A stretch of 64,000 nt of DNA from Mantamonas sphyraenae STR306. Taxonomy: Eukaryota; Protista; CRuMs. Position 1 is the first letter of the stretch; every line of letters starts with the position of its first letter. The stretch spans positions 124,001 through 188,000 of the forward strand of contig JAPMXV010000073.1 in NCBI GenBank assembly GCA_026936335.1, written 5' to 3'. Below, piece after piece: positions 8,946 through 49,319 of the stretch. The notes beneath the pieces are model-generated. The model had not been told where the DNA came from and searched no databases. It worked only from the letters and a program-made list of their open reading frames with translations. Made by a program: the position numbers and the translations under genes.

Positions 8946-9857
8946 ATGTCAACGAGCACGGTGGAGGCCATCGCACAGGAGTTGGAGGAACAATCCGAGT
9001 TGGAATTGTTTGCATTTGGGGAGTGCTTTGTGTATGCGGCCAAAGCCACGGGCACATCGATGGCACAGCGGGCACAGGATTGGGGCCTGAAGGACCCGCT
9101 TGCGGTGTGTTCCATCAAGGTGGTCAGCAAGGGCAGCGTCGGGTACATTCGACTGTACGACCTGGACACGGAGGAACTGTTTGCACAGGCGGTGATGGAT
9201 GGCCTGAGCAGTGAGTGTTTGGAACGGACGGCGGACAGCAGCCGGTACTTTGTGTGCCAGGTGCGAAGTGACGACGGCAAGAAAGCCTTTCTGGGCTTCG
9301 GGTTCAGGGACAGGGACAGTAGCGACGCCTTTCTCACCTCCATGGACTTTCATGATCGACATATTAACCTGGAGCGCAGGCGCAAGGAGGAGGCGGACGA
9401 GGACAAGGCGCTGGAGGCCCAGGAAGCGAAAGAGGAAGGGAATGAGCAGCAGCAGCAGCAGGAGAAGGAAGGCAGGAAGCCACGCAAGAAAAAGCACGAT
9501 TTCTCACTCGGGGCTGGGACAATCACCCTGTCTGTGGCAGGGAACAAGGGTCATGAGCCAAAGAAGAGTCCAAGGGGTGGGAAGAGTGGTGGTGGTGGTG
9601 GTGGACTGGGCCTTGCGCCTCCGCCGGAAGAAGGCAGCCCGTTGCACACACGCAAGCATGTCAAGACGACACAAGAGACAAGTGAGACACAGGGGAAGGA
9701 GACAGGGGCACAGGAGGAGGAGAGGGGACAGAGTAGCAGCACGGGCCAGCAGAAGGCAGGGAAGAAGGAGGAAGAGGGGGAGGTGGAGTGGGGGGAATTC
9801 GCAGAGGGGACCAGTGTCGATGTGGAAGAGGGTGATGATGAATGGGCGGCTTTTTGA
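8946..9857 (+). CDS. NECAP: Adaptin ear-binding coat-associated protein (NECAP/PHear domain), intact copy
   Basis: ECFVY, RAQDW, EELFAQ, ERTADSSRYFV, GKKAFLGFGFRDR, DFSL..GTITL, LAPPP and the C-terminal acidic WxxF motif (DDEWAAF). Confidence 0.9.
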   Translation: MSTSTVEAIAQELEEQSELELFAFGECFVYAAKATGTSMAQRAQDWGLKDPLAVCSIKVVSKGSVGYIRLYDLDTEELFAQAVMDGLSSECLERTADSSRYFVCQVRSDDGKKAFLGFGFRDRDSSDAFLTSMDFHDRHINLERRRKEEADEDKALEAQEAKEEGNEQQQQQEKEGRKPRKKKHDFSLGAGTITLSVAGNKGHEPKKSPRGGKSGGGGGGLGLAPPPEEGSPLHTRKHVKTTQETSETQGKETGAQEEERGQSSSTGQQKAGKKEEEGEVEWGEFAEGTSVDVEEGDDEWAAF

Positions 9858-10433
9858 TGCAGCCATCACACACGTGGGCATGGAGTCATCCGGAATGATT
9901 GATGGCCAAATACAGGGCAGGGCATGTGGTGCATCGACCAGTTGACAAGGATGATCCACAACGATGATTCTGCACAAACTGAATCTCATGAGAGGGAACG
10001 TGGGAACACACACAGGCACAGTCCATGGCAGGTCATTTGTGTGGCCAATTGGACATGGCACAGAGGATGGTGGGTGGGAAGGACGAAGTGGATGAATAGG
10101 GCAGTTGGGGATGGTGATGGGGGTTGATGAATGGCAGAGTTGGATGCGTGATTGAGTCACACATGAGCAGGGAACAACAATGGTTTTCCGTTGCGGATGA
10201 CCATGGATGAGGGAGTGCTGCGCATGGGTGACCACACTTTTCCTGTACAAGTAACGGTAGGTGGGAATGGCCATGGAGGGTTGGAAAGGGAGAGAGGGGT
10301 TGTGTGTGTGTGATTGTGTGTGTGTGTGCGTGTGGTGGGGGAAGGGTCTTTGGGTTTTGGGAGGAAACCCTCTCGCGTCACACCCAAGTCGTTGGCTGCT
10401 TGCTCACGAGGTGGGCGAACAGACACGAGTACG

Positions 10434-12921
10434 ATGAGTAGAGAACTGAGCCAACAGGAATGGAAAGAGTTGCTACAGGCCGGCGATGAGCAAGCGATCA
10501 GTCAAGCCTTGGCAGGCGCGGGCAAGGTGAGTGTTGTTGTGGAGCGCAGTGGACCACAAGTGATGTGGTCATGAATAGCAGTAGAATTGGACTAACAGCA
10601 CATTGCAGGTGCTAGACCTCATGGACAACCAGATTGGTGCCGAAGGGGCAGCTGCGTTGGGAACGGGACTGGCGCAGAACAGCACATTGCAGCAGCTGTA
10701 CCTCACTAGCAACCAGATTGGTGACGAAGGGGCATCAGCGTTGGGCACGGGACTGGCACAGAACAGCACATTGCAGTGGCTGTACCTCAGTGACAACCAG
10801 ATTGGTGCCGAGGGGGCAGCAGCGTTGGGTACGTTACTGGCACAGAACAGCACATTGCAGTGGCTGGACCTCAGAAGCAACCAGATTGGTGCCGAAGGGG
10901 CAGCAGCGTTGGGTACGTTACTGGCACAGAACAGCACATTGCAGTGGCTGGACCTCAGAAGCAACCAGATTGGTGCCGAAGGGGCAGCAGCGTTGGGTAC
11001 GTTACTGGCACAGAACTGCACATTGCAGCAGCTGGTCCTCAGTAGCAACAAGATTGGTGACGAAGGGGCAGCAGCGTTGGGCACGGGACTGGCACAGAAC
11101 AGCACATTGCAGTGGCTGGACCTCAGAAGCAACCAGATTGGTGCCGAAGGGGCAGCAGCGTTGGGTACGTTACTGGCACAGAACTGCACATTGCAGCAGC
11201 TGGTCCTCAGTAGCAACAAGATTGGTGACGAAGGGGCAGCAGCGTTGGGCACGGGACTGGCACAGAACAGCACATTGCAGCAGCTGTACCTCAGTAGCAA
11301 CCAGATTGGTGCCGAAGGGGCAGCTGCGTTGGGCATGGGACTGGCACAGAACAGCAGCTGCTGGTGTCTCTCTGGTGTTGACCATCCTGATCTGCAGGCC
11401 AAGATCGAACAAAACAAAGCACAGGCTGAGTCCTTCCTGTCCACTGCCCGTGACGGCGACACAAATACCATGGCGAAGTTGCTGGCATGGGGAGTGCCTG
11501 TGAACACTTGGGCGGACCGGAAGAACACTGCCCTTGGCATTGCTGTAGAGAAGGGTGACATCGACCTGTGCGCATGGCTGCTTGAGCGTGGTGCAAATCC
11601 CTACCTTCGACCTGATGACTCCAAACCCAACGCCCTTGATCTCGCCCATCGCAAGGGAAACACTGCCATCATTGATCTACTGGTGTCGCAGATGAGCTTG
11701 TCACACCCGCCTAGATCGCCTTCGCCACCGGTGATTGACGTTGAGTCGCATCTGGAGATTGCATGGTCAGACTTGCGACAGGGCGAGCTGATAGGAGAGG
11801 GTGGGTTTGCGTTTGTGTACAAAGGAATGCTGCGTGGAAGCACACCGGTGGCAATCAAGATGATGAAGGTGCAGGTGATGGATGAGGCACACACAGCCGC
11901 ATTCCACCACGAGGTGTCGGCGATGAAGCATCTGCGGCATCGCAATGTGTTGATGCTGCATGGGGTGTGCATGGAACAGCAGCAGGTGTGCATGGTGACG
12001 GAACTGTGTGAAATGGGGTCGCTGAACGCGCTGTTGCACGCCGAGGTGCGAGAGGAGCCACTGTCTGAGGCGATGAAGCTGCAGATTGCACTGGATGTGG
12101 CACAGGGGATGGCGTACCTGCATGGGTACCATCAGCCGATCATGCATCGGGATCTGAAACCGGAGAATGTGCTGCTGGATGAGCGGGGCGTGGCGAAAGT
12201 GAGCGACTTTGGCCTGAGCAGGAGCAAGGAGCACACAAAGACAAAGACCAAGGCAGGAGTGGGCACATGGCAGTACAGCGCACCCGAGGTGCTGTTTCAG
12301 GACGACAGTGGTGGTGGAGGCAACCAAGGCAAGAAGAAGAAGAAGAAGAAGAAGCGTGGACTCAAGAATGATTCGTCATCGTCATCGTCGTCGTCATTGG
12401 AGTCGACATCATCGGGATCAGGGCCCTCGCATGGGTCACGGGGCAGTGAAGACGCGGGGGCACAGGCGTCGATTGACGAAAAGGTGGATGTGTACTCATT
12501 TGCGATGCTGTTGTGGGAGCTGGTGCATGAAGAGCGTCCATACGAGTACGAGGAAACGTACAGCCTGGAGAACCACGTGGTGGAGTGGGTCAAAGACAGG
12601 GACGTGCGAGAGGAAATCGACGAGGATGTTTGTCCGTCGTGGGCGGCGGCGCTGATCCAGCGGTGTTGGCAGACTGACCCTGCGGGACGACCGACGTTTG
12701 AGGAGATTGTGGAGGAGCTGAGGAAGGCAAAGGTGGAGGAGAAAGGGCAAGGGGGTGGAGAACGTGTGCACAGTGAGCTGGTGGAGCTGGTGCACGGGAT
12801 TCATGCATTGCTGGTGGCGCAGGGAAAGGATGGGATGCTGCTGCAGGTGTCACTGGACGAGTTTCGACAGGAGTTTCGTCATTCGCAGGGCGAGGTGGAG
12901 GATGAGGAGGATGGTGTGTGA
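10434..12921 (+). CDS. LRR(9)-ankyrin-TKL-type protein kinase, copy 1 (exons 10434-10526, 10609-12921)
   Basis: 31-codon first exon, gtgagt donor, ACTAAC...ttgcag acceptor. 9 x 28-aa RI-like LRRs, ankyrin (NTALGIAVEKGDIDLCAWLLERGANP), kinase motifs GEGGFAFV, VAIK, HRDLKPEN, DFG, GTWQYSAPE, DVYSFA. Confidence 0.9.
10603..11358 (+). repeat. 9 x 84-bp coding LRR tandem repeat
   Basis: Unit ttgcagNNgctgNNcctcNNNNNNaaccagattggtgmcgaaggggcagcwgcgttgggcacgggactggcacagaacagcaca; 756 bp = 9 x 84. Confidence 0.95.
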
Positions 12922-13552
12922 CAAGACAAAGGAGATGGGCATGGTGGATGACCCAGGGCTGTGTGGCAAGGAATGGATTGTCAACGCCAGTCCGTGTTTC
13001 TCAGATACGCAAGCGCCTCCTGAATGACCATGCACAGAGGCCACAAGAGACAACAACGCACCACTGAACAGCAAATGGAATGCGTGCATGGCCATGCAAG
13101 CTTGTTGGCCGATGATCATCACCACGATCAAGTCTTCCAAGTCGGCGTTGTGTGTGTGATCCTACAATATACATTCTGCTTCGTTGCTGTCGCTGCTATG
13201 ATTCTGCCATGTGCGCCTGATGCAACAATGCCCACACTCCGGCAATTCGGCACCATGGAAGCTACTCCGAGACATTGCTGTCGAGCTTTGCGGCCAGCAT
13301 GGTCTCAAACTCGTCAGCCACGACCCCATTGAAGGATGATGTCCATGCCTTTTCAGGGTTCTTGTATGTGGTGGGTCGTTCTGGAGTGAGGTGGAAGGCG
13401 GGGACGCGGGGCAGGGTGGTGATGAAGGTGTGTCAGGGGTTTGGGTGCTGTGAGAGGACACCAGGGGATCACCAAGGGGGGAACACATGTCCTATCGATC
13501 TCATGTATGCGTGTGCATGGTATGATGCACTGTGCATCACAGTGCAATTTTC

Positions 13553-14299
13553 ATGGACGTGTGTGTGGGCAGCGTCAGCTACATTCGACTGTACGACCTG
13601 GACACGGAGGAACTGTTTGCACAGGCGGTGATGGATGGCCTGAGCAGTGAGTGTTTGGAACGGACGGCGGACAGCAGCCGGTACTTTGTGTGCCAGGTGC
13701 GAAGTGACGACGGCAAGAAAGCCTTTCTGGGCTTCGGGTTCAGGGACAGGGACAGTAGCGACGCCTTTCTCACCTCCATGGACTTTCATGATCGACATAT
13801 TAACCTGGAGCGCAGGCGCAAGGAGGAGGCGGACGAGGACAAGGCGCTGGAGGCCCAGGAAGCGAAAGAGGAAGGGAATGAGCAGCAGCAGCAGCAGCAG
13901 CAGCAGGAAGGCAGGAAGCCACGCAAGAAAAAGCACGATTTCTCACTCGGGGCTGGGACAATCACCCTGTCTGTGGCAGGGAACAAGGGTCATGAGCCAA
14001 AGAAGAGTCCAAGGGGTGGGAAGAGTGGTGGTGGTGGTGGTGGAGGACTGGGCCTTGCGCCTCCGCCGGAAGAAGGCAGCCCGTTGCACACACGCAAGCA
14101 GGTCAAGACGACACAAGAGACAAGTGAGACACAGGGGAAGGAGACAGGGGCACAGGAGGAGGAGAGGGGACAGAGTAGCAGCACGGGCCAGCAGAAGGCA
14201 GGGAAGAAGGAGGAAGAGGAGGAGGTGGAGTGGGGGGAATTCGCAGAGGGGACCAGTGTCGATGTGGAAGAGGGTGATGATGAATGGGCGGCTTTTTGA
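13553..14299 (+). pseudogene. 5'-truncated NECAP duplicate (open frame retained; junction supplies an ATG at 13553)
   Basis: Near-identical to NECAP from GSV(G/S)YIRL onward; lacks roughly the first 60 codons. Confidence 0.8.
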
Positions 14300-14905
14300 T
14301 GCAGCCATCACACACGTGGGCATGGAGTCATCCATCATGTAATGATTGGTGGTCAAATACAGGCTGTGGTGCATCGACCAGTTGACAAGGATGATCCACA
14401 ACGATGATTCTGCACAAACTGAATCTCATCAGAGGGAACGTGGGAACACACACAGGCACAGTCCATGGCAGGTCATTTGTGTGGCCACTTGGACATGGCA
14501 CAGAGGATGGTGGGTGGGAAGGTAGAAGTGGATGAATGTAGGGCTGTTGGGGATGGTGATGGGGGTTGATGAATGACAGAGTTGGATGCGTGATTGAGTC
14601 ACACATGAGCAGGGAACAACAATGGTTTTCCGTTGCGGATGACCATGGATGAGGGAGTGCTGCGCATGGGTGACCACACTTTTCCTTCACAAGCAACGGT
14701 GGGTTGGAATGGCCATGGAGGGTTGGAAAGGGAGAGAGGGGTTGTATGTGTGTGTATGTGTGTGTGTGATTGTGTGTGTGTGATTGTGTGTGTGTGTGTG
14801 CGTGTGGTGGGGGAAGGGTCTTTGGGTTTTGGGAGGAAAACCCTCTCGCACAGCTCCGAGTCTTTGGCTGCTTGCTCACGCGGTGGGCGCACAGACACGG
14901 TTGCG

Positions 14906-17159
14906 ATGAGTAGAGCACTGAGCAAACAGGAATGGAAAGGGTTGCTACAGGCCGGCGATGAGCAAGCGATCAGTCAAGCCTTGGCAGGCGCGGGCACGGT
15001 GAGTGTTGTTGTGGAGCGCAGAACTCGTTGCCACTTGGACCACAAGTGATGAGGTCATGTCATGAATAGCAGTGGAATTGGAAACTAACAGCACGTTGCA
15101 GAAGCTGTACCTCATGAACAACCAGATTGGTGACGAAGGGGCAGCTGCGTTGTGCACGGGACTGGCACAGAACAGCACATTGCAGCTGCTGTACCTCATG
15201 AACAACCAGATTGGTGCCGAAGGGGCAGCTGCGTTGGGCACGGGACTGGCACAGAACAGCACATCGCAGCTGCTGTACCTCATGAACAACCAGATTGGGG
15301 ATGAAGGGGCAGCTGCGTTGGGCACGGGACTGGCACAGAACAGCACATTGCAGCAGCTGGACCTCGAAAACAACCAGATTGGTGACGAAGGCGCAGCTGC
15401 GTTGGGCACGGGACTGGCACAGAACAGCACATTGCAGCAACTGGACCTCAGTCGCAACCAGATTGGTGACGAAGGGGCAGCAGCGTTGGGCACGGGACTG
15501 GCACAGAACAGCGCATTGCAGAAGCTGGAGCTCAATGGCAATCAGATCGGCGCCGAAGGGGCAGCTGCGTTGGGCACGGGACTGGCACAGAACAGCAGCT
15601 GCTGGTGTCTCTCTGGTGTTGACCATCCTGATCTGCAGGCCAAGATCGAACAAAACAAAGCACAGGCTGAGTCCTTCTTGTCCGCTGCCCGTGACGGCGA
15701 CACAGAAACCATGGCCGAGTTGCTGGCATGGGGAGTGCCTGTGAACACTTGGGCGGACCGGAAGAACACTGCCCTTGGCATTGCTGTCGAGAAGGGTGAC
15801 ATCGACCTGTGCGCATGGCTGCTTGAGCGTGGGGCAAATCCCTACCTTCGAACTAATGGCTCCAAACCCAACGCCCTTGATATCGCCCATCGCAAGGGGA
15901 ACACTGCCATCATTGATCTACTGATGACGCAGATGTTGTCACACCCGCCTAGATCGCCATCACCACCGGTGATTGACGTGGAGTCGCATCTGGAGATTGC
16001 ATGGTCAGACTTGCGACAGGGCGAGCTGATAGGAGAGGGTGGGTTTGCGTTTGTGTACAAAGGAATGCTGCGTGGAAGCACACCGGTGGCAATCAAGATG
16101 ATGAAGGTGCAGGTGATGGATGAGGCACACACAGCCGCATTCCACCACGAGGTGTCGGCGATGAAGCATCTGCGGCATCGCAATGTGTTGATGCTGCATG
16201 GGGTGTGCATGGAACAGCAGCAGGTGTGCATGGTGACGGAACTGTGTGAAATGGGGTCGCTGAACGCGCTGTTGCACGCCGAGGTGCGAGAGGAGCCACT
16301 GTCTGAGGCGATGAAGCTGCAGATTGCACTGGATGTGGCACAGGGGATGGCGTACCTGCATGGGTACCATCAGCCGATCATGCATCGGGATCTGAAACCG
16401 GAGAATGTGCTGCTGGATGAGCGGGGCGTGGCGAAAGTGAGCGACTTTGGCCTGAGCAGGAGCAAGGAGCACACAAAGACAAAGACCAAGGCAGGAGTGG
16501 GCACATGGCAGTACAGCGCACCCGAGGTGCTGTTTCAGGACGACAGTGGTGGTGGAGGCAACCAAGGCAAGAAGAAGAAGAAGAAGAAGAAGCGTGGACT
16601 CAATGATTCGTCATCGTCGTCATCGTCGTCGTCATTGGAGTCGACATCATCGGGATCAGGGCCCTCGCATGGGTCACGGGGCAGTGAAGACGCGGGGGCA
16701 CAGGCGTCGATTGACGAAAAGGTGGATGTGTACTCATTTGCGATGCTGTTGTGGGAGCTGGTGCATGAAGAGCGACCATACGAGTACGAGGAAACGTACA
16801 GCCTGGAGAACCACGTGGTGGAGTGGGTCAAAGACAGGGACGTGCGAGAGGAAATCGACGAGGATGTTTGTCCGTCGTGGGCGGCGGCGCTGATCCAGCG
16901 GTGTTGGCAGACTGACCCTGCGGGACGACCGACGTTTGAGGAGATTGTGGAGGAGCTGAGGAAGGCAAAGGTGGAGGAGAAAGGGCAAGGGGGTGGAGAA
17001 CGTGTGCACAATGAGCTGGTGGAGCTTGTGCACGGGATGCATGCATTGCTGGTGGCGCAGGGAAAGGATGGGATGCTGCTGCAGGTGTCACTGGACGAGT
17101 TTCGACAGGAGTTTCGTCATTCGCAGGGCGAGGTGGAGGATGAGGAGGATGGTGTGTGA
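14906..17159 (+). CDS. LRR(6)-ankyrin-TKL kinase, copy 2 (exons 14906-14998, 15102-17159)
   Basis: Same architecture as copy 1; 6 LRRs at 15096-15599; kinase nearly identical. Confidence 0.9.
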
Positions 17160-17861
17160 CAAGACAATGCAGAATGCGTTGCAATTCTGCCGCAGTGGTA
17201 TAAAATGAGCCAGGAGTTAACAGTCTATTTCACCATGACATAGGAGATGGGCATGGTGGATGACCCTGGACCGTGTGGCAAGGAATGGATTGTCAACGCC
17301 AGTCCATGTTTCTCAGATACGCAAGCGCCTCCTGAATGACCATGCACAGAGGCCACAAGAGACAACAACGCACCACTGAACAGCAAATAGAGTTCGTGCA
17401 TGGCCATGCGTGCTTGTTGGCGGACGATCACCACGATCAAGTCTTCCAAGTCGACTTTGTGTGTGTGATCCTTCAATGTACATTCTGCTTCGTTGCTGTC
17501 GCTGCTATGATTCTGCCATGTGCGCCTGATGCAACAATGCCCACACTCCGGCATTCGGCGTCATGAAAGCTACTCCGAGACATTGCTGTCGAGCTTTGCG
17601 GCCAGCATGGTCTCAAACTCGTCAGCCACGACCCCATTGAAGGATGATGTCCATGCCTTTTCAGGGTTCTTGTATGTGGTGGGTCGTTCTGGAGTGAGGT
17701 GGAAGGCGGGGACGCGGGGCGGGGTGGTGATGAAGGTGTGTCAGGGGTTTGGGTGCTGTGAGAGGACACCAGGGGATCACCAAGGGGGAATACACATGTC
17801 CTATCGATCTCATGTATGCGTGTGCATGGTATGATGCACTGTGCATCACAGTGCAATTTTC

Positions 17862-18608
17862 ATGGACGTGTGTGTGGGCAGCGTCAGCTACATTCGACTG
17901 TACGACCTGGACACGGAGGAACTGTTTGCACAGGCGGTGATGGATGGCCTGAGCAGTGAGTGTTTGGAACGGACGGCGGACAGCAGCCGGTACTTTGTGT
18001 GCCAGGTGCGAAGTGACGACGGCAAGAAAGCCTTTCTGGGCTTCGGGTTCAGGGACAGGGACAGTAGCGACGCCTTTCTCACCTCCATGGACTTTCATGA
18101 TCGACATATTAACCTGGAGCGCAGGCGTAAGGAGGAGGCGGACGAGGACAAGGCGCTGGAGGCCCAGGAAGCGAAAGAGGAAGGGAATGAGCAGCAGCAG
18201 CAGCAGGAGAAGGAGGGCAGGAAGCCACGCAAGAAAAAGCACGATTTCTCACTCGGGGCTGGGACAATCACCCTTTCTGTGGCAGGGAACAAGGGTCATG
18301 AGCCAAAGAAGAGTCCAAGGGGTGGGAAGAGTGGTGGTGGTGGTGGTGGTGGTGGACTGGGCCTTGCGCCTCCGCCGGAAGAAGGCAGCCCGTTGCACAC
18401 ACGCAAGCAGGTCAAGACGACACAAGAGACAAGTGAGACACAGGGGAAGGATACAGGGGCACAGGAGGAGGAGAGGGGACAGAGTAGCAGCACGGGCCAG
18501 CAGAAGGCAGGGAAGAAGGAGGAAGAGGAGGAGGTGGAGTGGGGGGAATTCGCAGAGGGGACCAGTGTCGATGTGGAAGAGGGTGATGATGAATGGGCGG
18601 CTTTTTGA
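17862..18608 (+). pseudogene. 5'-truncated NECAP duplicate, second
   Basis: As 13553-14299; both truncated copies carry the same substitutions relative to the intact gene (GSVSY, RKQVK, EEEEVEW). Confidence 0.8.
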
Positions 18609-19203
18609 TGCAGCCATCACACACGGTGGCATGGAGTCATCCGGAATGATTTATGGTCAAATACAGGGCAGGGCATGTGGTGCATCGACCAGTTGACAAG
18701 GATGATCCACAACGATGATTCTGCACAAACTGAATCTCATGAGAGGGAACGTGGGAACACACACAGGCACAGTCCATGGCAGGTCATTTGTGTGGCCACT
18801 TGGACATGGCACAGAGGATGGTGGGTGGGAAGGACGAAGTGGATGAATGTAGGGCTGTTGGGGATGGTGATGGGGGTTGATGAATGGCAGAGTTGGATGC
18901 GTGATTGAGTCACACATGAGCAGGGAACAACAATGGTTTTCCGTTGCGGATGACCATGGATGAGGGAATGCTGCGCATGGGTGACCACACTTTACCTGTA
19001 CAAGTAACGGTAGGTGGGAATGGCCATGGAGGGTTGGAAAGGGAGAGAGGGGTTGTGTGTGTGTGTATGTGTGTGTGTGTGTGATTGTGTGTGTGTGTGC
19101 GTGTGGTGGGGGAAGGGTCTTTGGGTTTTGGGAGGAAACCCTCTCGCACAGCTCCGAGTCTTTGGCTGCTTGCTCACGCGGTGGGCGCACAGACACGAGT
19201 ACG

Positions 19204-22200
19204 ATGAGTAGAGAACTGCACGAACAGGAATGGAAAGAGTTGCTACAGGCCGGCGATGAGCAAGCGATCAGTCAAGCCTTGGCAAGCGCGGGCAAGGTGA
19301 GTGTTGTTGTGGAGCGCAGTGGACCACAAGTGATGTGGTCATGAATAGCAGTAGAATTGGAAACTAACAGCACATTGCAGGAGCTGGACCTCTGGAACAA
19401 CCAGATTGGGGACAAAGAGGCAGCAGCGTTGGGCACGGGACTGGCACAGAACAGCACATTGCAGCAGCTGTACCTCAGTGACAACCAGATTGGTGACGAA
19501 GGGGCAGCAGCGTTGGGCACGGGACTGGCACAGAACAGCACATTGCAGCAGCTGTACCTCATGAACAACCAGATTGGGGACAAAGAGGCAGCAGCGTTGG
19601 GCACGGGACTGGCACAGAACAGCACATTGCAGCAGCTGTACCTCAGTGACAACCAGATTGGTGACGAAGGGGCAGCTGCGTTGGGCACGGGACTGGCACA
19701 GAACAGCACATTGCAGCAGCTGTACCTCAATTCCAACCAGATTGGTGACGAAGGGACAGCAGCGTTGGGCACGGGACTGGGACAGAACAGCACATTGCAG
19801 AAGCTGTACCTCAATTACAACCAGATTGGTGACGAAGGGGCAGCTGCGTTGGGTACGGGACTGGGACAGAACAGCACATTGCAGAAGCTGTACCTCAATT
19901 ACAACCAGATTGGTGACGAAGGGGCAGCAGCGTTGGGCACGGGACTGGGACAGAACAGCACATTGCAGCAGCTGTACCTCAGTAACAACCAGATTGGTGC
20001 CGAAGGGGCAGCTGCGTTGGGCACGGGACTGGCACAGAACAGCACATTGCAGTGGCTGAACCTCAGTTACAACCAGATTGGTGCCGAAGGGGCAGCAGCG
20101 TTGGGCACGGGACTGGCACAGAACAGCACATTGCAGCAGCTGTACCTCAGTGACAACCAGATTGGTGACGAAGGGGCAGCTGCGTTGGGCACGGGACTGG
20201 CACAGAACAGCACATTGCAGCAGCTGTACCTCAATGGCAACCAGATTGGTTACGAAGGGGCAGCTGGGTTGGGCACGGGGCTGGCACAGAACAGCACATT
20301 GCAGCGGCTGGACCTCAATGGCAACCAGATTGGTGACGAAGGGGCAGCAGCGTTGGGTACGGGACTGGCACAGAACAGTACAATGCAGGTGCTGTTCCTG
20401 AGAAGAAACCAGATTGGTGACGAAGGGGCAGCAGCGTTGGGCACGGGACTGGCACAGAACAGCACATTGCAGAAGCTGGACCTCACTAGCAACCAGATTG
20501 GTGACGAAGGGGCAGCTGGGTTGGGCACGGGGCTGGCACAGAACAGCACATTGCAGCGGCTGGACCTCAATGGCAACCAGATTGGTGACGAAGGGGCAGC
20601 AGCGTTGTGCACGGGACTGGCACAGAACAGCACATTGCAGCAGCTGTACCTCCGTATCAACCAGATTGGTGACGAAGGGGCAGCAGCGTTGGGCACGGGA
20701 CTGGCACAGAACAGCACATTGCAGAAGCTGGACCTCACTAGCAACCAGATTGGTGACGAAGGGGCAGCTGGGTTGGGCACGGGGCTGGCACAGAACAGCA
20801 CATTGCAGCGGCTGGACCTCAATGGCAACCAGATTGGTGACGAAGGGGCAGCAGCGTTGGGCACGGGACTGGCACAGAACAGCACATTGCAGCAGCTGTA
20901 CCTCAATTCCAACCAGATTGGCGCCGAAGGGGCAGCAGCGTTGGGCACGGGACTGGCACAGAACAGCAGCTGCTGGTGTCTCTCTGGTGTTGACTATCCT
21001 GATCTGCAGGCTAAGATCGAACAAAACAAAGCACACGCTGAGTCCTTCTTGTCCGCTGCCCGTGACGGCGATACAGAATCCATGGCCGAGTTGCTGGCGT
21101 TGGGAGTGCCTGTGGACACTTGGCCGAACGGGGAGAACACTGCCCTTGGCATTGCTGTCGAGAAGGGTGACATCGACCTGTGCGCATGGCTGCTTGAGCG
21201 TGGGGCAAATCCCTACATTCGACCTGCAGGCTTCAATCCCAACGCCCTTGATCTCGCCCATCGCAAGGGGAATACTGCCATCATTGATCTACTGGAGTCG
21301 CAGATGAACTTGTCACACCCGCCTAGATCGCCATCGCCACCGGTGATTGACGTGGAGTCGCATCTGGAGATTGCATGGTCAGAGTTGCGACAGGGCGAGC
21401 TGATAGGAGAGGGTGGGTTTGCGTTTGTGTACAAAGGAATGCTGCGTGGAAGCACACCGGTGGCAATCAAGATGATGAAGGTGCAGGTGATGGATGAGGC
21501 ACACACGGCAGCATTCCACCACGAGGTGTCGGCGATGAAGCATCTGCGGCATCGTAATGTGTTGATGCTGCATGGGGTGTGCATGGAACAGCAGCAGGTG
21601 TGCATGGTGACGGAACTGTGTGAGATGGGGTCGCTGAACGCGCTGTTGCACGCCGAGGTGCGAGAGGAGCCACTGCCTGAGGCGATGAAGCTGCAGATTG
21701 CACTGGATGTGGCACAGGGGATGGCGTACCTGCATGGGTACCATCAGCCGATCATGCATCGGGATCTGAAACCGGAGAATGTGCTGCTGGATGAGCGGGG
21801 CGTGGCGAAAGTGAGCGACTTTGGACTGAGCAGGAGCAAGGAGCACACAAAGACAAAGACCAAGGCAGGAGTGGGCACATGGCAGTACAGCGCACCCGAG
21901 GTGCTGTTTCAGGACGACGGTGGTGGTGGAGGCAACCAAGGCAAGAAGAAGAAGAAGAAGAAGAAGCGTGGACTCAAGAATGATTCGTCATCGTCGTCAT
22001 CGTCGTCGTCATTGGAGTCGACATCATCGGGATCAGGGCCCTCGCATGGGTCACGGGGCAGTGAAGACGCGGGGGCACAGGCGTCGATTGACGAAAAGGT
22101 GGATGTTTACTCATTTGCGATGCTGCTGTGGGAGCTGGTGCATGAAGAGCGACCATACGAGTACGAGGAATCTTACAGCCTGGAGAACCATTTGGTGGAG

Positions 22201-22536
22201 TGGATCCAAGACAGGGACATGCGAGAGGAAATCGACGAGGATGTTTGTCCGTCGTGGGCGGCGGCGCTGATCCAGCGGTGTTGGCAGACTGACCCTGCGG
22301 GACGACCAACGTTTGAGGAGATTGTGGAGGAGCTGAGGAAGGTAAAGGTGGAGGAGAAAGGGCAAGGGGGTGGAGAGCGTGTGCACAGTGAGCTGGTGGA
22401 GCTGGTGCACGGGATTCATGCATTGCTGGTGGCGCAGGGAAAGGATGGGATGCTGCTGCAGGTGTCACTGGACGAGTTTCGACAGGAGTTTCGTCATTCG
22501 CAGGGCGAGGTGGAGGATGAGGAGGATGGTGTGTGA
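19204..22536 (+). CDS. LRR(19)-ankyrin-TKL kinase, copy 3 (exons 19204-19296, 19381-22536)
   Basis: 19 x 84 bp LRRs at 19375-20970. Ankyrin region diverged (VDTWPNGENTAL vs VNTWADRKNTAL); kinase nearly identical to copies 1 and 2. Confidence 0.9.
19375..20970 (+). repeat. 19 x 84-bp coding LRR tandem repeat
   Basis: 1596 bp = 19 x 84, counted from the translation. Confidence 0.95.
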
Positions 22537-24075
22537 CAAGACAATGCAGAATGCGTTGCAATCCCGATCACGCTGCTGGATTCTGCCGCAGGGGTAAACC
22601 ATGAGCCAGGAGTTTCAAGTCTATTTCACCATGACATAGGAGATGGGCATGGTGGATGACCCAGGGCTGTGTGGCAAGGAATGGGTTGTCAACGCCAGTC
22701 CGTTCTTCTCAGAGTCGCAAGCGACTCCTCAATGACCATGCACAGAGGCCACAAGAGACAACAACGCACCACTGAACAGCAAATGGAATGCGTGCATGAC
22801 CATGCAAGCTTGTTGGCCGATGATCATCACGATCAAGTCTTCCAAGTCGACTTTGTGTGTGTGATCCTACAATGTACATTCTGCTTCGTTGCTGTCGCTG
22901 CTATGATTCTGCACTGTGCGCCTGATGCAACAATGCCCACACTTCGGCAATTCGGCACCATGAAAGCTACTCCGAGACATTGCTGTCGAGCTTTGCGGCC
23001 AGCATGGTCTCAAACTCGTCAGCCACGACCCCATTGAAGGATGATGTCCATGCCTTTTCAGGGTTCTTGTATGTGGTGGGTCGTTCTGGAGTGAGGTGGA
23101 AGGCGGGGACGCGGGGCGGAGTGGTGATGAAGGTGTGTCAGGGGTTTGGGTGCTGTGAGAGGGCACCAGGGGATCACCAAGGGGGGAACACATGTCGTAT
23201 CGGTCTCATGTATGTCTGTGCATGGTATGATACACTGTACATCACAGTGCATGGTCATGGACGTGTATGTGGGCCGGCAGAGGGTATTCACCCACCCCAG
23301 CTCCACAACAAAACTCACCCTCCTCCTTCACTTCAGGGTCCTGGATCTGTTGGATCACCTTTGCATACTCATTGTTGAGGTACTTTGCCGCAGCAACACT
23401 GTTGAATTCCATCCTCTCTTGTACGCGTGTGTGCGGCGGGTGTTTGGCTTTGTCGCCGCACCGCACCCTGCGCCATCGCCACCAGAAGTTTTTCAAGTTT
23501 AAATCACAGATTAAAATTTGACTTCAACATACCTATTACATCACGACTCCCTCATCATCGTGGACAGCGCCATGTTATCTCAGGCTGTGTGCGAATTCGG
23601 GAGTCCAAAGCAACGGCGTGCTCGCACGTCGAGATCGCAGACACACTGACCGGCCCAGTGCGTGCCCACGGGTGCTTAGCGGCCTCGTGGGTGCCATTGC
23701 TGTTAGGCTGGATTTACTGTGGTCTACATCCACCCACCCTTCTCCTCCATGCTAGCATGGTCCCATGAGAGTGCGTGGGTTTTCCCCTCCTTGCATGCGG
23801 AAAGCGCTCCCGCCTTGGTTTTCCCCGCTTCCTTTCAACCCTTGCATCCACCCAGATTCCCATCTGCTGTTTGCATGCGTGTCTATCCTCCCCTTTGCCA
23901 TGTTTGTGTGTGTGTGTGTGTCTACCGTCCATGTGTGTGTTTCGCTCTCCTTGCCTTCAGGAACCCCTCCACACACCCACTGAACAATGAGAACAATGAG
24001 AACAATGAACAATGAACCAAGGCGAATCAATCTCCTCATCTGTACATTCCACGCCTTGTTGGGCATGGTGTTCCC

Positions 24076-29839: not shown

Positions 29840-30540
29840 CTAGAAGGGATCGTCGTCGTCGTCGTCGTCGTTGAGCAGGAAGGAATCGTAGTTGCTGTTG
29901 CGATTGAGTGGGATGCGCAGTTTGCGTGCGTACGCCTGTGTCAACGCCTCCAGCGTGTCAAAGTGACTCTTCTTGTCCACAGTGTAGCCCTTGCCCGGGG
30001 CATTCTCGATGGGTTGGCCCACAATTTCCCTGTTGCCCTGCCTGCGTCGCACAAAGGTGACGATAAACTGGCCGGGGAAGGAGTTGCTGAAGCGCAACAG
30101 AAAGGTGCCCACGTCGCAGTTCTGCAGCTTCTTGGCCGCTTCGTTGCTGGCCAAATCGCCGTGGAACCAGGGTTTGTTCAGCGTGTCCCTGGCCCTGCTC
30201 ATGCAGTCGCCGTAGGGACCGAACCACTTGAGAAACACGTTGAAGCTCTCCTGGGTCACAAAGTCCAAGTACTCCTTGTTGCGTGTGTCCACCAGGTACT
30301 CCTTCAAATCGTCCATTCCTGCGCTGGTGATGTTGAACTGGCCCTGCATCGCCTCGGAAAACTCGTTCCACGCCACAAACAGGTTGCCCCCAAACGTTTC
30401 TATCCACATCCGTTGCGCCTCACTGTCTTGGATGTCCACCGTCTTCGTATTCACACCTCCGCCGTTGTTGTTGTTGCTGTTGCTGTTGTTGCTGTTGTTG
30501 TTGCCGCTGCTGTTGCTGCCATTGTTGTTTCCATCGCTGT

Positions 30541-30572
<32 letters not shown>

Positions 30573-30623
30573 TTTGTGCTGCCTGTGCTTCCACGTGCAC
30601 CTGCCTGCATGCCATTGCCCCCA

Positions 30624-30656
<33 letters not shown>

Positions 30657-33351
30657 CCAGCTCCACTCTGCACACCTCGTGTCATGTTCCCTCCTGCACC
30701 CTCCCCATCCTGCACATCCCCTCCGCCACTACTCCTGCCACTGGCGCTGGCAGTGCCACCGCTGCTGATGCTACTCTCGCCTGCCTCTGCCTCACTCGTC
30801 ATAATATCATACAGTTCCGACAGCGTGCGACCAGGCACGGCGTTGTACTTTGCGGCTGCGTGCAGGATGCTCAGCGGGTTGCCTCCCAAGTGTTCCATCA
30901 CCGCATGTGCTGCCAGCAGATCCAACGCACTCAGGCTGCGTCCGTTGGCCGGTTTGACCCCCTTGGGCGGTGCTCCGTTTGCATCCAGCAACTCCTCCAA
31001 CTTGATTTGGTTCGATCCACGTGAGGTCAGCTTGTTGAACAGAATGGCTGCGTCGCGGCCGGGCAGCGGACTCAACTGGTAGCCGTTGGGTGCCAGGTAG
31101 GCGGGTGTGTCCAGGTTGTGCCTCAGGGTCATGAGCACATGCAGGTGACCGAACCGTTGCAAGAGCGAGCCGATGTACTCGTTGAGTGCAAGTCCCTCGT
31201 GGTCCAACAGACTGTCGATGTCGTCCAGAATCAACAGGGCCTTTTCGTCCTTTTCGTTCAACTGGTCCCAAATCATGTCCTTGAGATCCATGAGATCGGG
31301 GCTGCTGCTGCTGCTGCTGCTGTTTGTCGTCTGCAGTGCCATGGCACGTCCTATGCGCTTGCAACACCCGAGCATGGACTTGATGCCGCGCATCTCCGCC
31401 CAGATGACTCCTCCCTCAAAGTAGCGCCGTTCGTTGACATACTGTGCCAGTGCCTTGGCCACGGTGGATTTGCCGATGCCCTGGTCCCCAAACAGCGTGG
31501 TGAACCTGCCCTTGGTCAGCGTCTGCACCACCTTGTACAAATCCACCTGCCGTCCCACAAAGTCGTCCGGAAACGGCAGCAGGTTGTTGTGTGGGATGGG
31601 CGACAACTCCTGCAGGCCACTGTCGGGCAAGCCCTCAAAGATGATTTCGTCGTGGTTGCCATCTTCCGGCAGGAGCAGAAACAGCTTGGCCGCCTCCTCC
31701 GGATGGGGCAACCCTTTGGAGGGTGGCAAGGCAGCCACCGTCTGTTTGGCAATGTCGTAGCTGGTCTGCACCGAACGTCCCTTGACCAGTGCATGGTAGA
31801 AGAAGAGGGAAAACTTCATCGCCGCGGTGTCTTCCACCTGCTTGTCCTGCTGCACAGCCACCACATGAGGCACTCCGGCCTCCACAAACTTCTGTCCTGC
31901 CACCCCGGAGTAGCACGCACTCACAAACACAAACCGCACCCCACTCGACGAGTCACTCCCTCCCGTCACGTCGTCCCCCGCACTAAACAGCTGCTTCAGC
32001 GTCTCCACCTTTAGGTCGTGCAATCCTCCCGAATCGTTTTCAACTGTGTGTGTGGGGGGTGGGTTGGGTGGGTGGGTTGGGTGAGTGGGTGTGAGGAGGA
32101 GGAGGGAGAAGTGGCAGTGAGATCTCGCCCTGGTTCAAATCGCCTTTTCTCACCCCTCCGGGAGTTTGGGGAGGGGGAGAGGAGGGGAGGATGGGTGCAG
32201 GATGGGAGGATGAAAGAAGGGAGCACATACACGCGAGACAGGAAGGGAAGCCATGGCCGCTGTAATGAAAAGCGCGGCACCCGGTGCTGATGAGAAAGCG
32301 AAAGTTCTCGACAGTGGCAATGTCCTGGCGCACACGCAGGCCCTTCTTTGTGTTCTTGAGAATCTTGAGGAGACCATCGGATTCCTGGCGTAGATTGAGC
32401 ATCTGCAAGGGACGGAAGGTGTTGTTGTCGTTGAAGACCAGGGGCGCGGCAAAGAGCATGCACAGATCAATCTCGCTTTGCTGGTAGTCATACGACGCAG
32501 GCGTACTGCTGCTGCTGCTGCTCGATGATGTGATCCCACCTCCTCCCAACAGAGTGGATGCCGTGCTACTGTCCACCATGGACAACAACGACAGCAACTC
32601 GTTGGGGTTGGTTTGGAAGTTCATGTTGCCCAGTCCCAGCTGCGCCAGTGCCTTGAGGTCCGATTCCGTGATGGAACGGCCCCCCAGCGTCATGCTGATG
32701 GCCTCACGCAACCCTTCGCTCTGTGTTTCTCTGTGGTTGTGATGGGTGGGTGTGTGGGGTGAGGGAGGGTGTGTGTGGTGGTGTGTTGCGTGGTGGGGGA
32801 CGATGGGTGTGCAAGCGCCAAAAAACGCAGAGGCCCAGCGGGACGGCGGCGGAAAAACGGTGCCGTGTGGACGTGGTGAGGACATAGAGGGGGGCCATGG
32901 ACACACGTACTGGAGGGAAGGAGAGGAATCACTGCGTGATTGACCAAGCGTGCTTTCGCTCTGGGTGTGCAGGAGGGACGTGCGTGCGCCGTGCTTGTTG
33001 TCGCCTTCTTGGGAGGGCGATTCGGCCTTGGGCCGCAAAGGGGAGCCTGGAAACGCCGTGTCCACGCTGTACCGTGTCACCTTGACCACATCCTCATCCA
33101 CCTCACGTAGCTCCTCCTCAGAGCTTTCTGCGCCCACCAGACCACCGTGTGTCTCGTTGTCCTGCGACTGAAACGGGGAACACGCGCGGGCGGCGGGGGA
33201 TGGGGCGTGGAAGGGGCAAAAAGGGGATCACACACCCAGACACAGGCACCACACACACAATGTCAGCAGGCATCCGGTGAGAATGGTGGCATCAAAGAGA
33301 GAGAATGCGGGTGTGGGGTGGTGTGGGACAACAACTCACCATGGTTTGCAT
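29840..33351 (-). CDS. CHAT (caspase-like) - STAND/NB-ARC-type P-loop ATPase - S/N linker - EF-like linker + SH2 protein (exons ~33351-33340, 33167-32911, 32730-32231, 32043-29840)
   Basis: CHAT: LFAAPL..LNLRQE..AT....FHYSGHG..LAFE and FVFVSACYS..F..AGVPHVV..F...FYHAL..G.SV..SY..AK. STAND: FVGR, GDQGIGKS, LLILDDID, GGNPL. SH2: WFHG..EA..KL....GTFLLRFS. The first exon is uncertain. Confidence 0.85.
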
Positions 33352-42541: not shown

Positions 42542-44726
42542 ATGAGCACACAGACGAAAGTGGACTGGCATTCACTGCTGCAGAACGGTGATGAGGAGCG
42601 CATTGGAGCGGCGTTGGCAGAGGCGGGTGAGGTATGTTTGTGCGGAGGGAAGGGAGGGGAAAGTCGTGGACGTGTCAGACGAAACGCATGGAGAGAGTAG
42701 GGTTTGGGACGATGGTTTCCTGAGATACGGGATGTGATCGCTGACACGAGTGGTGCAGCATTTGAACCTCGGGGAAAGGATCACGGACAATCTGGCAAAG
42801 GCACTGGCAAAGAACAGCAGCTTGAAGTCACTGAGACTTCGCAGCAACGTCATTGGGGAAGAGGAAGCAGCCGAACTGGCGCAGGCGCTGAGGGAGAACA
42901 GCAGTTTGGAGCACCTGGAAATGTACCAGAACAGCCTTGGCTACAGAGGGGTAGCAGCATTGGCAGACGCACTGTGTGAGAACAGCACCCTGCGGAGCTT
43001 GCACATCGGGAGCAACAGCATCGGTGACGAAGGTGCAGCAGAACTGGCCAAGGCTGTGGTTGTGAACAGCTGCCTGCAGGAGCTGAGCCTCGGCTTCAAC
43101 GACATCGGAGTCGAAGGGGCAGCAGCACTGGCAAGTACTCTGTGTGAGAACAACAGCTTGCAGACACTGGACCTCAGCCACAACACCATCGGTATAGAGG
43201 GTGTAACAGCACTGAGCAAGGCACTTTGCAAGAATAGTAGCTTGCTGACCTTGGAGCTTTACCACAACAACGTCGGGCACGAAGGAGCAACAGTGCTGGG
43301 AAAGGCACTGTGTGACAACAACAGCTTGCAGACACTGGACCTCAGACACAATGACATTGGTGCAGAGGGAGCAACAGCGCTGAGCGAGGCACTTTGCAAC
43401 AACAGCAGCTTGCTGTCCTTGCAGCTGTACTACAACAACGTCGGGCACGAGGGTGCATCAGCACTGGCGACGGTTCTTTCTGTGAACGACACCTTGCGGA
43501 CACTGGATCTGGACAGCAACGATATCGGGGACGAGGGAACATCCGCGCTGGCCAAGGCACTGTGTGACAACAACAGCCTGCAGACACTGATTCTCAATCG
43601 CAATAGCATCGGTGCAGAAACTGCAACTAAACTGAGCATGGCACTGTGCAACAACAGCAGCTTGCTGACACTGACTCTCGACGGCAACTCCATCGGTGCA
43701 GCTGGTGCACTAGCACTGAGCAAGGCACTGTGCACCAACAGCAGCTTGCAGACATTGCATCTCTACAAATCCAACGTCGGGGACGAGGGAGTAGCAGCGC
43801 TGGCACAGGCGCTGAGTGGGAACAGCACCTTGCGTCGCCTAAACATTGAGGGCAACGTCATCGGGGCCGAAGGGGCTGCAGCACTGGCAAAGGCACTGAC
43901 GGAAAACAACAGCTTGCAGAGACTGGGCCTTGGGGACAGCAACATCAGGGATGAAGAAGCATCAGCACTGGCGCAGGGACTGGGTGAAAACAACAGCTTG
44001 CAGACACTCATACTCAGCAGGAACAGCATCGGAGACAAAGGAGCAGCTGCTCTGGCGCAGGCACTGAGCAAGAACAGCACCTTGCAGAGACTGAATCTCA
44101 GAAACAATGTTATCAGCGCAGCAGGAGCAGTGGCACTGGCACAGGCGCTTGTTGAGAACAGCACCTTGCAGGAGCTGGAACTCGCGGCCAACTTCATCTT
44201 GAAGAAGGGAATTTCGGCTCTGGCAGTTGCGATGGAAGACAATCGATCAAGCTGGAAGATTGGCACCGGATCCCTAGTGTATGATCCACTGCGGTCACTG
44301 TTGGAGAGGAACAATGAGCGGCATGTGGAGTTTGTGCAGTGTGGGGATGTGAAGAGGATGGCTGGGCTGAGGGAGTGGGGTGTGCCCGTGGACACGCTTG
44401 CTGCACGTGAGGAGACGGCATTGGATAGAGCGGTGAAACAAGGGAATGATGAGGTGGTGGAGGCATTGCGGGGCTGGGGTGCTACAGTGAGTGAAAAGAC
44501 CGTGAAGTTGGTGAGGGAGGGAGGATGGAGGAAGGAGTGGCATTGGATCGGGTGGAGTGGGGTGGTGGATGAGGGGATGGAAGTGGCGTTGGTGATGAAT
44601 GGGGAGGAGAGGGAAGTGATGTTTGAGTGTGGGGGGATGGAAGGGTATGAGGCGAGTTGTGATTGGTGGACGGTGCCAGATGAGGTGATGGACAGGGTGT
44701 TGGGGTGGATGGGCAAGGGAGGGTGA
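42542..44726 (+). CDS. LRR(~18)-ankyrin-F-box-like-tail protein, copy A (exons 42542-42631, 42759-44726)
   Basis: 30-codon exon MSTQTKVDWHSLLQNGDEERIGAALAEAGE, gtatgt donor, CTGAC..tgcag acceptor. 28-aa RI-like LRRs, Ank ETALDRAVKQGNDEVVEALRGWGA, tail WWTVPDEVMDRVLGWM. Confidence 0.88.
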
Positions 44727-45007
44727 GGAGAGAGTGATGGGAATGAATGGTGGATTTGGGTTGGGTGGGGTTTGGCATTGGAGGGGATGGGGGTTGGGAA
44801 GGGGAAAGGTGGGAGTTGTGCCCTGCTCGGATGCACTGGGTGGACCACTGGAACTTGGAAAGAGACAAGGTTGGTGTGCAGAGGGAGGGATGCGACTGTG
44901 CATGGGGCTGGGTCATGGAAGGGGCGTTGTGGAAGGGCAAAAGGAGGAAGCCGAGATGGGTGTGACGTGCTGGAGCTCACACGGGACGCAGGACCAGTTT
45001 GTTGAGC

Positions 45008-47144
45008 ATGGGCTCAAAGAACATGGATAGTTGGAAGGAACTACTGCAGAGTGGTGATGAAGAGCGCATTGCAGTGGCATTGGCAGAGGCGGGTGAGGTA
45101 TGTTTGTGCGGCGGGAAGGGAGGGGGAAGTCGTGGACGTGTCACAGACGAGGAGGGGGGTGAGGGGAGACACGAACGCATGGAGAGAGTAGGGTTTGGAC
45201 GATGGTTGCGTGAGATACGGGATGTGATCGCTGACACGAGTGTTGCAGCAATTGACCCTGTGGGAGAGGATCAGGGGCAATCTGATGGTGACACTGGCCA
45301 AGGCACTGGCAAAGAACAGCAGCTTGAAGTCACTAAACCTTGGCGGCAGCGGTATCGGGGAGGAGGAAGCAGCCGAACTGGCGCAGGCGCTGAGGGAGAA
45401 CAGCAGTTTGGAGCACCTGGAAATGTACCAGAACAGCCTTGGCTACAGGGGGGTAGCAGCATTGGCAGACGCACTGTGTGAGAACAGCACCCTGCGGAGC
45501 TTGAACATTGGAGGCAGCAACATCGGTGACGAAGGTGCAGCAGAACTGGCCAAGGCTGTGGTTGTGAACAGCTGCCTGCAGGAGCTGAGCCTTTGTTTCA
45601 ACAACATCGGAGCCGAAGGGGCAGCAGCACTGGCAAATACTCTTTGTGAGAACAACAGCTTGCAGAGGCTGAACCTCAGCCACAACACCATCGGTATAGA
45701 GGGTGCAACAGCACTGAGCAAGGCACTGTGCAACAACAGCACCTTGGTGACCTTGCTGCTCTACAGAACCAAGGTTGGGGACGAGGGAGCGACGGCGCTG
45801 GCAAGGACTCTTTCTGTCAACGACACCTTGCGCAAACTGGACCTGGATAGCAACGGCATCGGGGAAGAGGGGGCATCAGCGCTGGCAAAGATTCTCTGTG
45901 AAAACAACAGCTTGCAGACACTGAATCTCAACCGCAATAGCATCGGTGCAGAAACTGCAACTAAACTGAGCATGGCACTTTGTGAAAACAGCAGCTTGAA
46001 GACCTTGCATCTCTACTCCAACAACATCGGTCCCGAGGGAGCAGCAGCGCTGGCACAGGCGCTGTGTGAGAACAGCATCTTGCAGACACTGAATCTCAAC
46101 AGCAACGACATCGGTGCAGAGGGTGCACTAGCACTGAGCAAGGCACTGTGCACCAACAGCAGCTTGCAGACATTGCAGCTTCACCACACCAAAATCGGGG
46201 ACGAGGGAGCGTCGGCGCTTGCACAGGCCATGTACGTGAACAGCACCTTGCGTCGCCTAAACATTGAGGGCAACGTCATCGGGGCCGAAGGGGCTGCAGC
46301 ACTGGCAAAGGCACTAACGGAAAACAACAGCTTGCAGAGACTGGACCTTGGTGACAACAACATCAGGGATGAAGAAGCATCAGCACTGGCGCAGGGACTG
46401 GGTGATAGCAGCAGCCTGCAGACACTCTTCCTCAGCAAGAACAACATCGGGGACAAAGGAGCAGCTGCTCTGGCGCAGGCGCTGAGCAAGAACAGCACCT
46501 TGCAGAGACTGGATCTGAGAAACAATGTTATCGGGACAGCAGGAGCAGTGGCACTGGCACAGGCGCTTGTTGAGAACAGCACCTTGCAGGCACTGGAACT
46601 CGGAGCCAACTTCATCTTGAAGAAGGGAATTTCGGCTCTGGCAGTTGCGATGGAAGACAATCGATCGTGCTGGAGGATTGACACCGGATCCTTCGTGTAT
46701 GATCCACTGCAATCGCTGTTGGAGAGGAACAAGGAGCGGCATGTGGAGTTTGTGCAGTGTGGGGATGTGGAGAAGATGGCTGCGTTGAGGGAGTGGGGTG
46801 TGCCTGTGGACACGCTCGCTGCACGTGAGGGGACGGCATTGGAACGAGCGGTGAAGCAAGGGAATGATGAGGTGGTGGAGGCATTGCGGGACTGGGGTGC
46901 TACAGTGAGTGAAGAGACCGTGAAGTTGGTGAGGGAGGAAGGGTGGAGGAAGGAGTGGCATTGGATTGGGTGGAGTGGGGTGGTGGATGAGGGGATGGAA
47001 GTGGCGTTGGTGATGAATGGGGAGGAGAGGGAAGTGATGTTTGAGTGTGGAGGGATGGAGGGGTATGAGGCGAGTTGTGAGTGGTGGACGGTGCCGGATG
47101 AGGTGATGGAGAGGGTGTTGGGGTGGATGGGCAAGGGAGGGTGA
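45008..47144 (+). CDS. LRR(~17)-ankyrin-tail protein, copy B (exons 45008-45097, 45249-47144)
   Basis: Same architecture; closest to copy A. Confidence 0.88.
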
Positions 47145-49116: not shown

Positions 49117-49319
49117 GGAGAGAGTGATGGGAATGAATGGTGGATTTGGGTGGTGGGAAGGGTTGGATTGGAGGGTTGGGTGGGTGGAGGGGGGGGGAGA
49201 GGAGGGAGTTGTGTGTCTGGTGCTCGGATGCACTGGGTGGCCCACTGGAACTTGGATAGAGGCAAGGTTGGTCGGTGGTGTCTGTGTGGGAAGGGTGATG
49301 GTGGTGGAGAAGAGTGTGG

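Follow-up and report, generated by a model that had tools for sequence, protein, structure and literature searches.

What can a kinase recognise when its sensor is built from leucine-rich repeats (LRRs) that are almost copies of one another except at four codons? Three such genes lie side by side in a 64,000-nucleotide stretch of the genome of Mantamonas sphyraenae STR306 (contig JAPMXV010000073.1, positions 124,001 to 188,000; hereafter the window, whose coordinates are used throughout). This single-celled marine predator belongs to the CRuMs, which branch near the base of Amorphea, and the means by which free-living unicellular eukaryotes detect intracellular bacteria and viruses are largely an open question. 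An earlier note, made from the sequence alone, had described 34 repeats in three paralogues and proposed a repeat code like that of transcription activator-like (TAL) effectors (TALEs), with cassettes that can be freely reordered. Working from one strain and one assembly, with the sequence present in the public data of a single study, we confirm that the observation is real, and the design is one already described for candidate immune receptors of fungi and algae, with clear precedents.

Tandem Repeats Finder and an in-register reading agree on arrays of 9, 6 and 19 units of 84 bp, as first described, with the former placing them at 10594-11356 (9.1 copies), 15087-15597 (6.1) and 19366-20968 (19.1). 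Per-site entropy likewise bears out near-identical units that vary mainly at codons 6, 8, 10 and 11 (2.3, 1.7, 2.5 and 2.5 bits); values elsewhere are at most 0.5 bits except at codon 16, an A/D dimorphism with 1.1 bits, and the remaining scaffold is nearly fixed. The residue sets given in the earlier note were exact at codon 6 (Q/K/W/R/V/L/E) and codon 8 (Y/D/V/E/N/F), as was its count of 16 diresidue forms at codons 10-11. The four variable codons hold 23 of the 39 alternative amino-acid alleles, where the expectation for the top four is 13.6 over 28 positions (none of 200,000 draws reached 23) and 17.6 over the 16 tolerant positions (p=0.006). The 34 units comprise 29 distinct DNA sequences, among which there are 23 four-site words. 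A scaffold "almost invariant even at DNA level" is too strong a description: DNA identity of the repeats within a gene is 0.89-0.91, and units are near-identical but not invariant, differing at 3-5 of 72 scaffold bases.

The gene A repeats match the Pfam family LRR_6 (E=1e-61), and the units have the 28-29 residue LxxLxLxxN strand plus helix of LRRs like those of ribonuclease inhibitor (RI; LRR_6/NLRC3-type). An AlphaFold model of the LRR-ankyrin part of gene A (predicted local distance difference test, pLDDT, 95; predicted template modelling score, pTM, 0.91) repeats a short strand and a helix every 28 residues, and its best structural matches are NOD2 and ribonuclease inhibitor. In RI-like horseshoes, the strand and the following loop form the concave face and its rim. 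Codons 6-8 of the model form the strand and codons 10-11 come directly after it, which places the variable sites on one surface, as had been expected. The predicted structure is thus an RI/NOD2-like LRR horseshoe to which each repeat contributes four variable residues, located on the concave strand and the loop after it.

Selection was assessed by counting methods only. Four LRR families were sampled genome-wide (288 units in total): F1 comprises the three tandem kinase genes studied here, F2 and F4 are LRR-ankyrin genes with a short box-like motif at the end, and F3 genes encode LRR, ankyrin, coiled coil and kinase. Among distinct F1 units, the proportion of nonsynonymous differences (pN) at the four sites is 0.436, compared with 0.105 for synonymous differences (pS), a ratio of 4.2 (bootstrap 2.7-10). 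Over six exposed positions pN is 0.291, and in the scaffold it is 0.038 (pN/pS ~0.36), so that the nonsynonymous excess the earlier note had suggested looking for is indeed found at the variable sites. A minimum-change count per codon, which is less sensitive to shuffling, put nonsynonymous changes at the four sites at 28, compared with 18 synonymous ones overall (p=3e-4). With sites fixed in advance, pN/pS is 1.95 (1.5-2.8) in F2 and 1.4 (1.2-1.8) in F3, with rough bootstrap intervals, and ~2.8 among close pairs in these two families. By these counts, the four sites are shown to be under diversifying selection and the scaffold under purifying selection.

The arrays also turn over by unit and block duplication, as had been proposed. 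In array A, units A4, A5 and A7 are identical in DNA, as are A6 and A8; in array C, block duplications pair C14-15 closely with C17-18, C4 exactly with C10, and C6 closely with C7. "Freely reordered" is nonetheless an overstatement, since identical units occur only within genes, none being shared between them, and units cluster partly by gene. The best cross-gene match of a unit differs on average at 6-7.5 of 84 bases where flank divergence predicts 1.7-2.5 (7-9% versus 2-3% for the upstream flanks). The arrays are therefore not simply orthologous copies, and either they were rewritten after the genes were triplicated or the flanks have been homogenised. A tree of units mixes A, B and C, with 9 changes (minimum 2, shuffled 13.2), though support is low and recent triplication also predicts mixing. 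There are three four-gamete violations among units, all involving one synonymous site.

The arrays belong to three tandem two-exon genes that, from their predicted products, combine LRR, ankyrin and tyrosine kinase-like (TKL)-type kinase modules:

10434..10526, + strand: gene A exon 1; 31 codons, hydrophilic, with no signal-peptide-like stretch; spliced junction in run X3
10527..10608, + strand: gene A intron; GT..AG, phase 0, with a branch-point-like CTAAC and the acceptor inside the first LRR unit
10594..11349, + strand: LRR array A; 9 units of 84 bp
11350..11680, + strand: gene A LRR C-cap, linker helix and ankyrin repeats; hairpin residues vary among paralogues
11755..12921, + strand: gene A TKL-type kinase; intact motifs, poly-Lys/poly-Ser insert at ~12301-12470, short C-terminal tail
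14906..14998, + strand: gene B exon 1, predicted
15087..15590, + strand: LRR array B; 6 units, exon 2 starting at 15102
15591..17159, + strand: gene B cap, ankyrin and kinase
19204..19296, + strand: gene C exon 1, predicted
19366..20961, + strand: LRR array C; 19 units with block duplications, exon 2 starting at 19381
20962..22536, + strand: gene C cap, ankyrin and kinase

The genes extend to 22536, beyond the 20970 at which the range in the earlier note ends, and the ankyrin module sits between LRR and kinase. In each gene a short phase-0 GT-AG intron separates a 31-codon exon 1 from the long exon 2 that encodes LRR, cap, ankyrin and kinase; exon 2 was used for searches and folding, and exon 1 was examined on its own. 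The genes of M. sphyraenae are mostly mono-exonic (PMC10492846). All LRR units of a gene share one open frame rather than occupying one exon per repeat. In each of the three genes the first five codons of unit 1 are intronic, because the splice acceptor falls at their end. Across 10594-20961 nearly every unit has an in-frame copy of the acceptor hexamer, with the adjacent CTAAC only at unit 1. Alternative use of these internal acceptors would shorten the array from its N-terminus; no alternative splice junctions at internal repeats were seen. A contig of the public run X3, which carries the source label "DNA?", joins exon 1 of gene A to the predicted start of exon 2. This junction sequence was not found in the genome, and we therefore infer that X3 is RNA and that gene A is transcribed and spliced.

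The kinases of A, B and C all carry intact Gly loop, VAIK lysine, HRD, DFG and APE motifs, and these motifs and a Pfam match (PF07714, E=4e-55) assign them to the TKL group. Between kinase subdomains VIII and IX lies a poly-Gly/poly-Lys/poly-Ser insert (12301-12470, with copies at 16539 and 21913), possibly a signal for nuclear or membrane targeting; in paralogues elsewhere, an acidic insert takes its place. No membrane helix was found (maximum 19-residue hydropathy 1.1), and the proteins are predicted to be cytosolic. Pfam found no NACHT or NB-ARC domain in gene A, which is thus not a nucleotide-binding, leucine-rich repeat receptor (NLR) of the signal transduction ATPases with numerous domains (STAND) type.

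The genes sit within a larger tandem triplication, with a truncated neighbour carried along:

9135..23275, + strand: tandem triplication of the 3' part of a NECAP-like gene, the LRR-ankyrin-kinase gene and its 3' flank
13575..14299, + strand: 5'-truncated NECAP-like (PF07933) copy, co-duplicated; a third copy is at 17884-18608 and the full-length copy ends at 9857

Triplication junctions fall near 13570 and 17880, at short GGGC microhomology. The copies diverge by 2-3% in upstream flanks, 3-6% in downstream flanks and 1.9-3.8% in post-LRR coding sequence, and amino-acid differences outside the LRR lie mostly in the cap and ankyrin part, hairpin residues included. Collapsed Illumina contigs are ~2-3x deeper than copy-specific contigs.

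The F1 genes also look chimeric: a non-kinase family supplied the 5' end and the type of repeat, and a kinase family the ankyrin-kinase part. Their repeat scaffold is at a distance of 0.14 from F2 and 0.33 from F3, and F2 genes share ~70% identity with them in the upstream region and exon 1. Their cap-ankyrin part groups with F3 and another kinase paralogue (Shimodaira-Hasegawa-like approximate likelihood ratio test, SH-aLRT, 92, in a quick tree with a long-branch warning), and their kinase is ~70% identical to the kinases of these genes. The sensor module has apparently been swapped between output domains.

The RI-like LRR repertoire of the genome is very large, with 2116 first-look candidates, many near contig ends. 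Many LRR matches lie 3-8 kb or less from a contig start (for example on C9, C18, C19, C22, C31, C39, C60, C67, C68), suggesting subtelomeric enrichment. On contig C9 (~151.5-155.2 kb; L048:3565-7182), an ankyrin-kinase paralogue has a full Hsp70 domain (PF00012, E=2e-169) at its N-terminus, replacing most of the LRR array, and resembles a protein with an integrated decoy or sensor domain. No informative Atlas or Pfam match was obtained for the C-terminal tail of a paralogue. Within the window, ~7 kb downstream of the kinase cluster, a gene at 29840-32023 (- strand) encodes a CHAT-NACHT-Cbl EF hand-SH2 protein that is NLR-like, with a protease-like effector and SH2 in the sensor position. Eight older tandem F4 LRR-ankyrin genes occupy 42738-59920, with within-gene DNA identity of ~0.64 and a conserved terminal box-like motif. 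We do not call this ending of the non-kinase families F-box-like, as the one gene tested had no Pfam F-box match at E<=0.1. Closely related F2 gene blocks occur on contigs C76, C77 and C73:48-58 kb; they include some near-identical pairs (L043/L045), differ in repeat number, and may be paralogues or separately assembled haplotypes.

The genes work like diversifying repeat receptors, and are neither TALEs, NLRs, receptor-like kinases (RLKs) nor exon-shuffled LRR genes. In Podospora, NWD repeats evolve in concert with four positively selected codons per unit (PMC1805685), a mechanism later generalised to ANK and TPR repeats, while no LRR was found in fungal NLRs (PMC4986451). The Podospora NWD/HNWD genes (HET-D, HET-E, HET-R) and other fungal NLRs of high internal conservation share near-identical units and variable repeat number with our genes (PMC1805685, PMC4986451, PMC12222747). 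The NWD/HNWD genes exchange repeats within and between genes and, as here, have four selected binding-surface codons per repeat. The NWD-type threshold of >85% identity over >=100 residues is a protein identity, which we matched through the within-gene DNA identity; selection on a few binding-face codons per repeat is likewise found here, by counting and with the location taken from the model. In contrast to the fungal genes, the Mantamonas genes have an RI-like LRR rather than WD40, ANK or TPR repeats, no NACHT or NB-ARC, a kinase output, an N-terminal sensor and a unicellular flagellate host.

The Ectocarpus LRR-ROCO and LRR-kinase genes shuffle LRR units between paralogues, include kinase outputs and have a proposed immune role (PMC3341825, PMC11378527). 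Selected sites in their LRR exons (15, 17, 19 and 20, on the concave face; PMC3341825) have the same 2-2-1 spacing as codons 6, 8, 10 and 11. However, each 24-residue LRR there is its own exon, whereas 28-residue units share one exon here, are ~90% identical in DNA and are followed by an ankyrin module that precedes the kinase. Tetrahymena, like Mantamonas a unicellular bacterivore with a massive LRR expansion, has LRR genes made of 90-bp exons whose unit number varies by unequal crossing over, and its subtelomeric and pericentromeric clustering also recalls the present case (PMC6564038). Its 30-residue units are exon-based, with retrotransposon involvement, and "positive selection" is absent from the main text of that paper (PMC6564038). 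Plant LRR-RLKs couple a variable concave LRR face to a TKL-group kinase; here there is no signal peptide or membrane helix, and the LRRs are RI-like, not plant-specific.

The same 28-residue RI-like repeat occurs in coral NLRC3-like NLRs, a Pelomyxa "NLRC3" and Rickettsia LRR proteins (P0011, P0046, P0060, P0021), with scaffold identity of 0.79-0.91 and variability mostly at the same positions. Their partner domains are NACHT and TPR, and they were compared by repeat uniformity; 7 of 96 homologues reach a scaffold identity of 0.8. No close relative of the whole protein was found in the homologue search, and a cap-ankyrin search returned generic ankyrin proteins only. The best full-length match (P0007, 35%) is on a bacterial metagenome contig, and we do not claim horizontal transfer because its ankyrin-kinase part is only 29% identical. 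That bacterial LRR-ankyrin-kinase gene (L059:8001-10430) lies beside recG and a PARP/SidE-PDE-family gene and is effector-like. Our literature searches found no paper describing the Mantamonas genes, and "leucine" is absent from the main text of the genome paper (PMC10492846).

We consider it likely that these genes encode sensor kinases of the cytosol, engaged in an arms race against non-self ligands that vary; proteins or glycans from intracellular bacteria, viruses or prey are the likeliest ligands. Through unequal crossover and gene conversion between near-identical units, repeats would be copied, deleted and mixed while the scaffold stays uniform, and point mutations at the binding face would be selected. 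Because units are homogenised and shuffled while binding-face mutations are selected, adjacent repeats may form a composite, antibody-like surface, and occasional recombination would move a sensor array onto another output. Ligand binding could relieve autoinhibition or cluster the kinases, leading to autophosphorylation and then to a defence or prey-handling response. The sequences support the evolutionary steps, whereas ligand, activation and output are what we infer. Several points count against this view. The pairs behind pN/pS are non-independent, and recombination can inflate site tests; the four F1 sites were picked for their variability and replicated only in F2 and F3, more weakly; gene conversion that keeps kinases and flanks alike could make array turnover look faster than it is; and spliced junctions of genes B and C were not seen in the public run contigs.

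One alternative is that the ligand is self: kin or self/non-self (allorecognition-like) recognition, or guarding of a fast-evolving self protein. Podospora HET-D/E, mechanistically the nearest precedent, recognises a self protein that is polymorphic (PMC12222747), and both the nearby CHAT-NACHT-SH2 gene and the Hsp70-bearing paralogue fit a guard or decoy logic. However, the protein is cytosolic, with no membrane helix, and the size of the LRR repertoire fits many foreign ligands better. We also know of no cell fusion in this lineage, and we regard a self ligand as unlikely.

The variation could instead be a neutral by-product, either of slippage expansion with relaxed exposed residues or of a mutational hotspot resembling diversity-generating retroelement (DGR) mutagenesis. 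In any LRR the exposed positions tolerate the most change, the young tandem duplicates and their truncated neighbours point to unstable DNA, and the third bases of the variable codons are kept (NNG/NNC), as in DGR template codons. But relaxed constraint yields a pN/pS of up to 1, not ~4, and a pS of ~0.1 by itself predicts fixed third positions. Fourfold sites between the variable codons are no noisier than others, with codons 7 and 9 each varying in a single one of 29 units, and of the five adenines at scaffold third positions four vary in 0-2 units (codon 20 being a dimorphism), so no local or A-specific hypermutation is indicated. Single-step intermediates between unit variants are mostly present in the unit pool. 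We reject DGR-like or hotspot mutagenesis, as variation is confined to four codons and synonymous adenines are mostly fixed, although the analysis included no search for a reverse transcriptase or template; a neutral origin as a whole seems very unlikely.

A bolder version of the receptor reading, a combinatorial system in which homogenised units rearrange so quickly that clones differ, whole arrays are swapped between kinase and other outputs, and repeats are additive enough for a partly programmable code for linear ligands, we regard as a long shot. Another reading is the TALE-like modular code of the earlier note, in which the diresidue of each repeat would read a single monomer in a linear polymer (nucleic acid, peptide or glycan) and the order of repeats would spell out the target. 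The scaffold is uniform and units are swappable, and codons 10 and 11 travel together (16 pair types versus 20 in shuffles, p=0.006), as adjacent codons are expected to do by shared descent. The poly-Lys stretch of the kinase could be a nuclear signal, and an NLRC-type LRR of shrimp can bind DNA (PMC12370184), so that binding of nucleic acid is conceivable here too. Even so, the fold is that of an RI-like LRR, not TAL helices, and there are four or five variable sites per unit rather than a single pair. TALE specificity uses a few recurring diresidues in a helical repeat, and neighbouring LRR strands are so close that a ligand residue normally contacts several repeats. No small alphabet recurs here: besides the 23 four-site words and 16 diresidues in 29 units, there are at least 101 diresidues in 288 units (Chao1 ~132), and the dominant ones differ from family to family. 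With 21% Y/W/F, 32% N/S/G, 11% K/R and 14% D/E, the variable sites have no net positive charge, and their composition resembles antibody loops more closely than a nucleic-acid reader. Although TAL effectors share tandem near-identical repeats, a variable adjacent residue pair and differing repeat number, the present units differ in fold, length (28-residue beta/alpha, not 33-35 residues and helical), residues unsuited to base reading and fusion to a eukaryotic kinase, and no TAL family is among the Pfam matches. Recognition could be partly additive if the ligand were an extended peptide or glycan, but the code itself we judge highly improbable. A mis-assembly of repeat number, order or triplication is scarcely credible, even though repeats this similar are difficult to assemble, Illumina data by themselves fail on arrays of this kind (PMC12222747) and no public contig spans an array to confirm unit order or alleles, given a likely PacBio source assembly (read N50 ~11 kb, ~110x) with Illumina polishing (PMC10492846), three open frames, 29 distinct units with changes concentrated on four codons, copies differing by 2-6% and the depth of the collapsed contigs; such an error could affect exact unit order, not the pattern.

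As candidate sensors of variable non-self ligands, the three Mantamonas kinases provide specific candidate receptors for non-self recognition in CRuMs. They extend the strategy of homogenised repeats with four selected codons from fungal WD40, ANK and TPR repeats and algal exon-encoded LRRs to RI-like LRRs within a single exon, with the sensor here wired directly to a kinase, and their naturally uniform scaffold could serve binder design.

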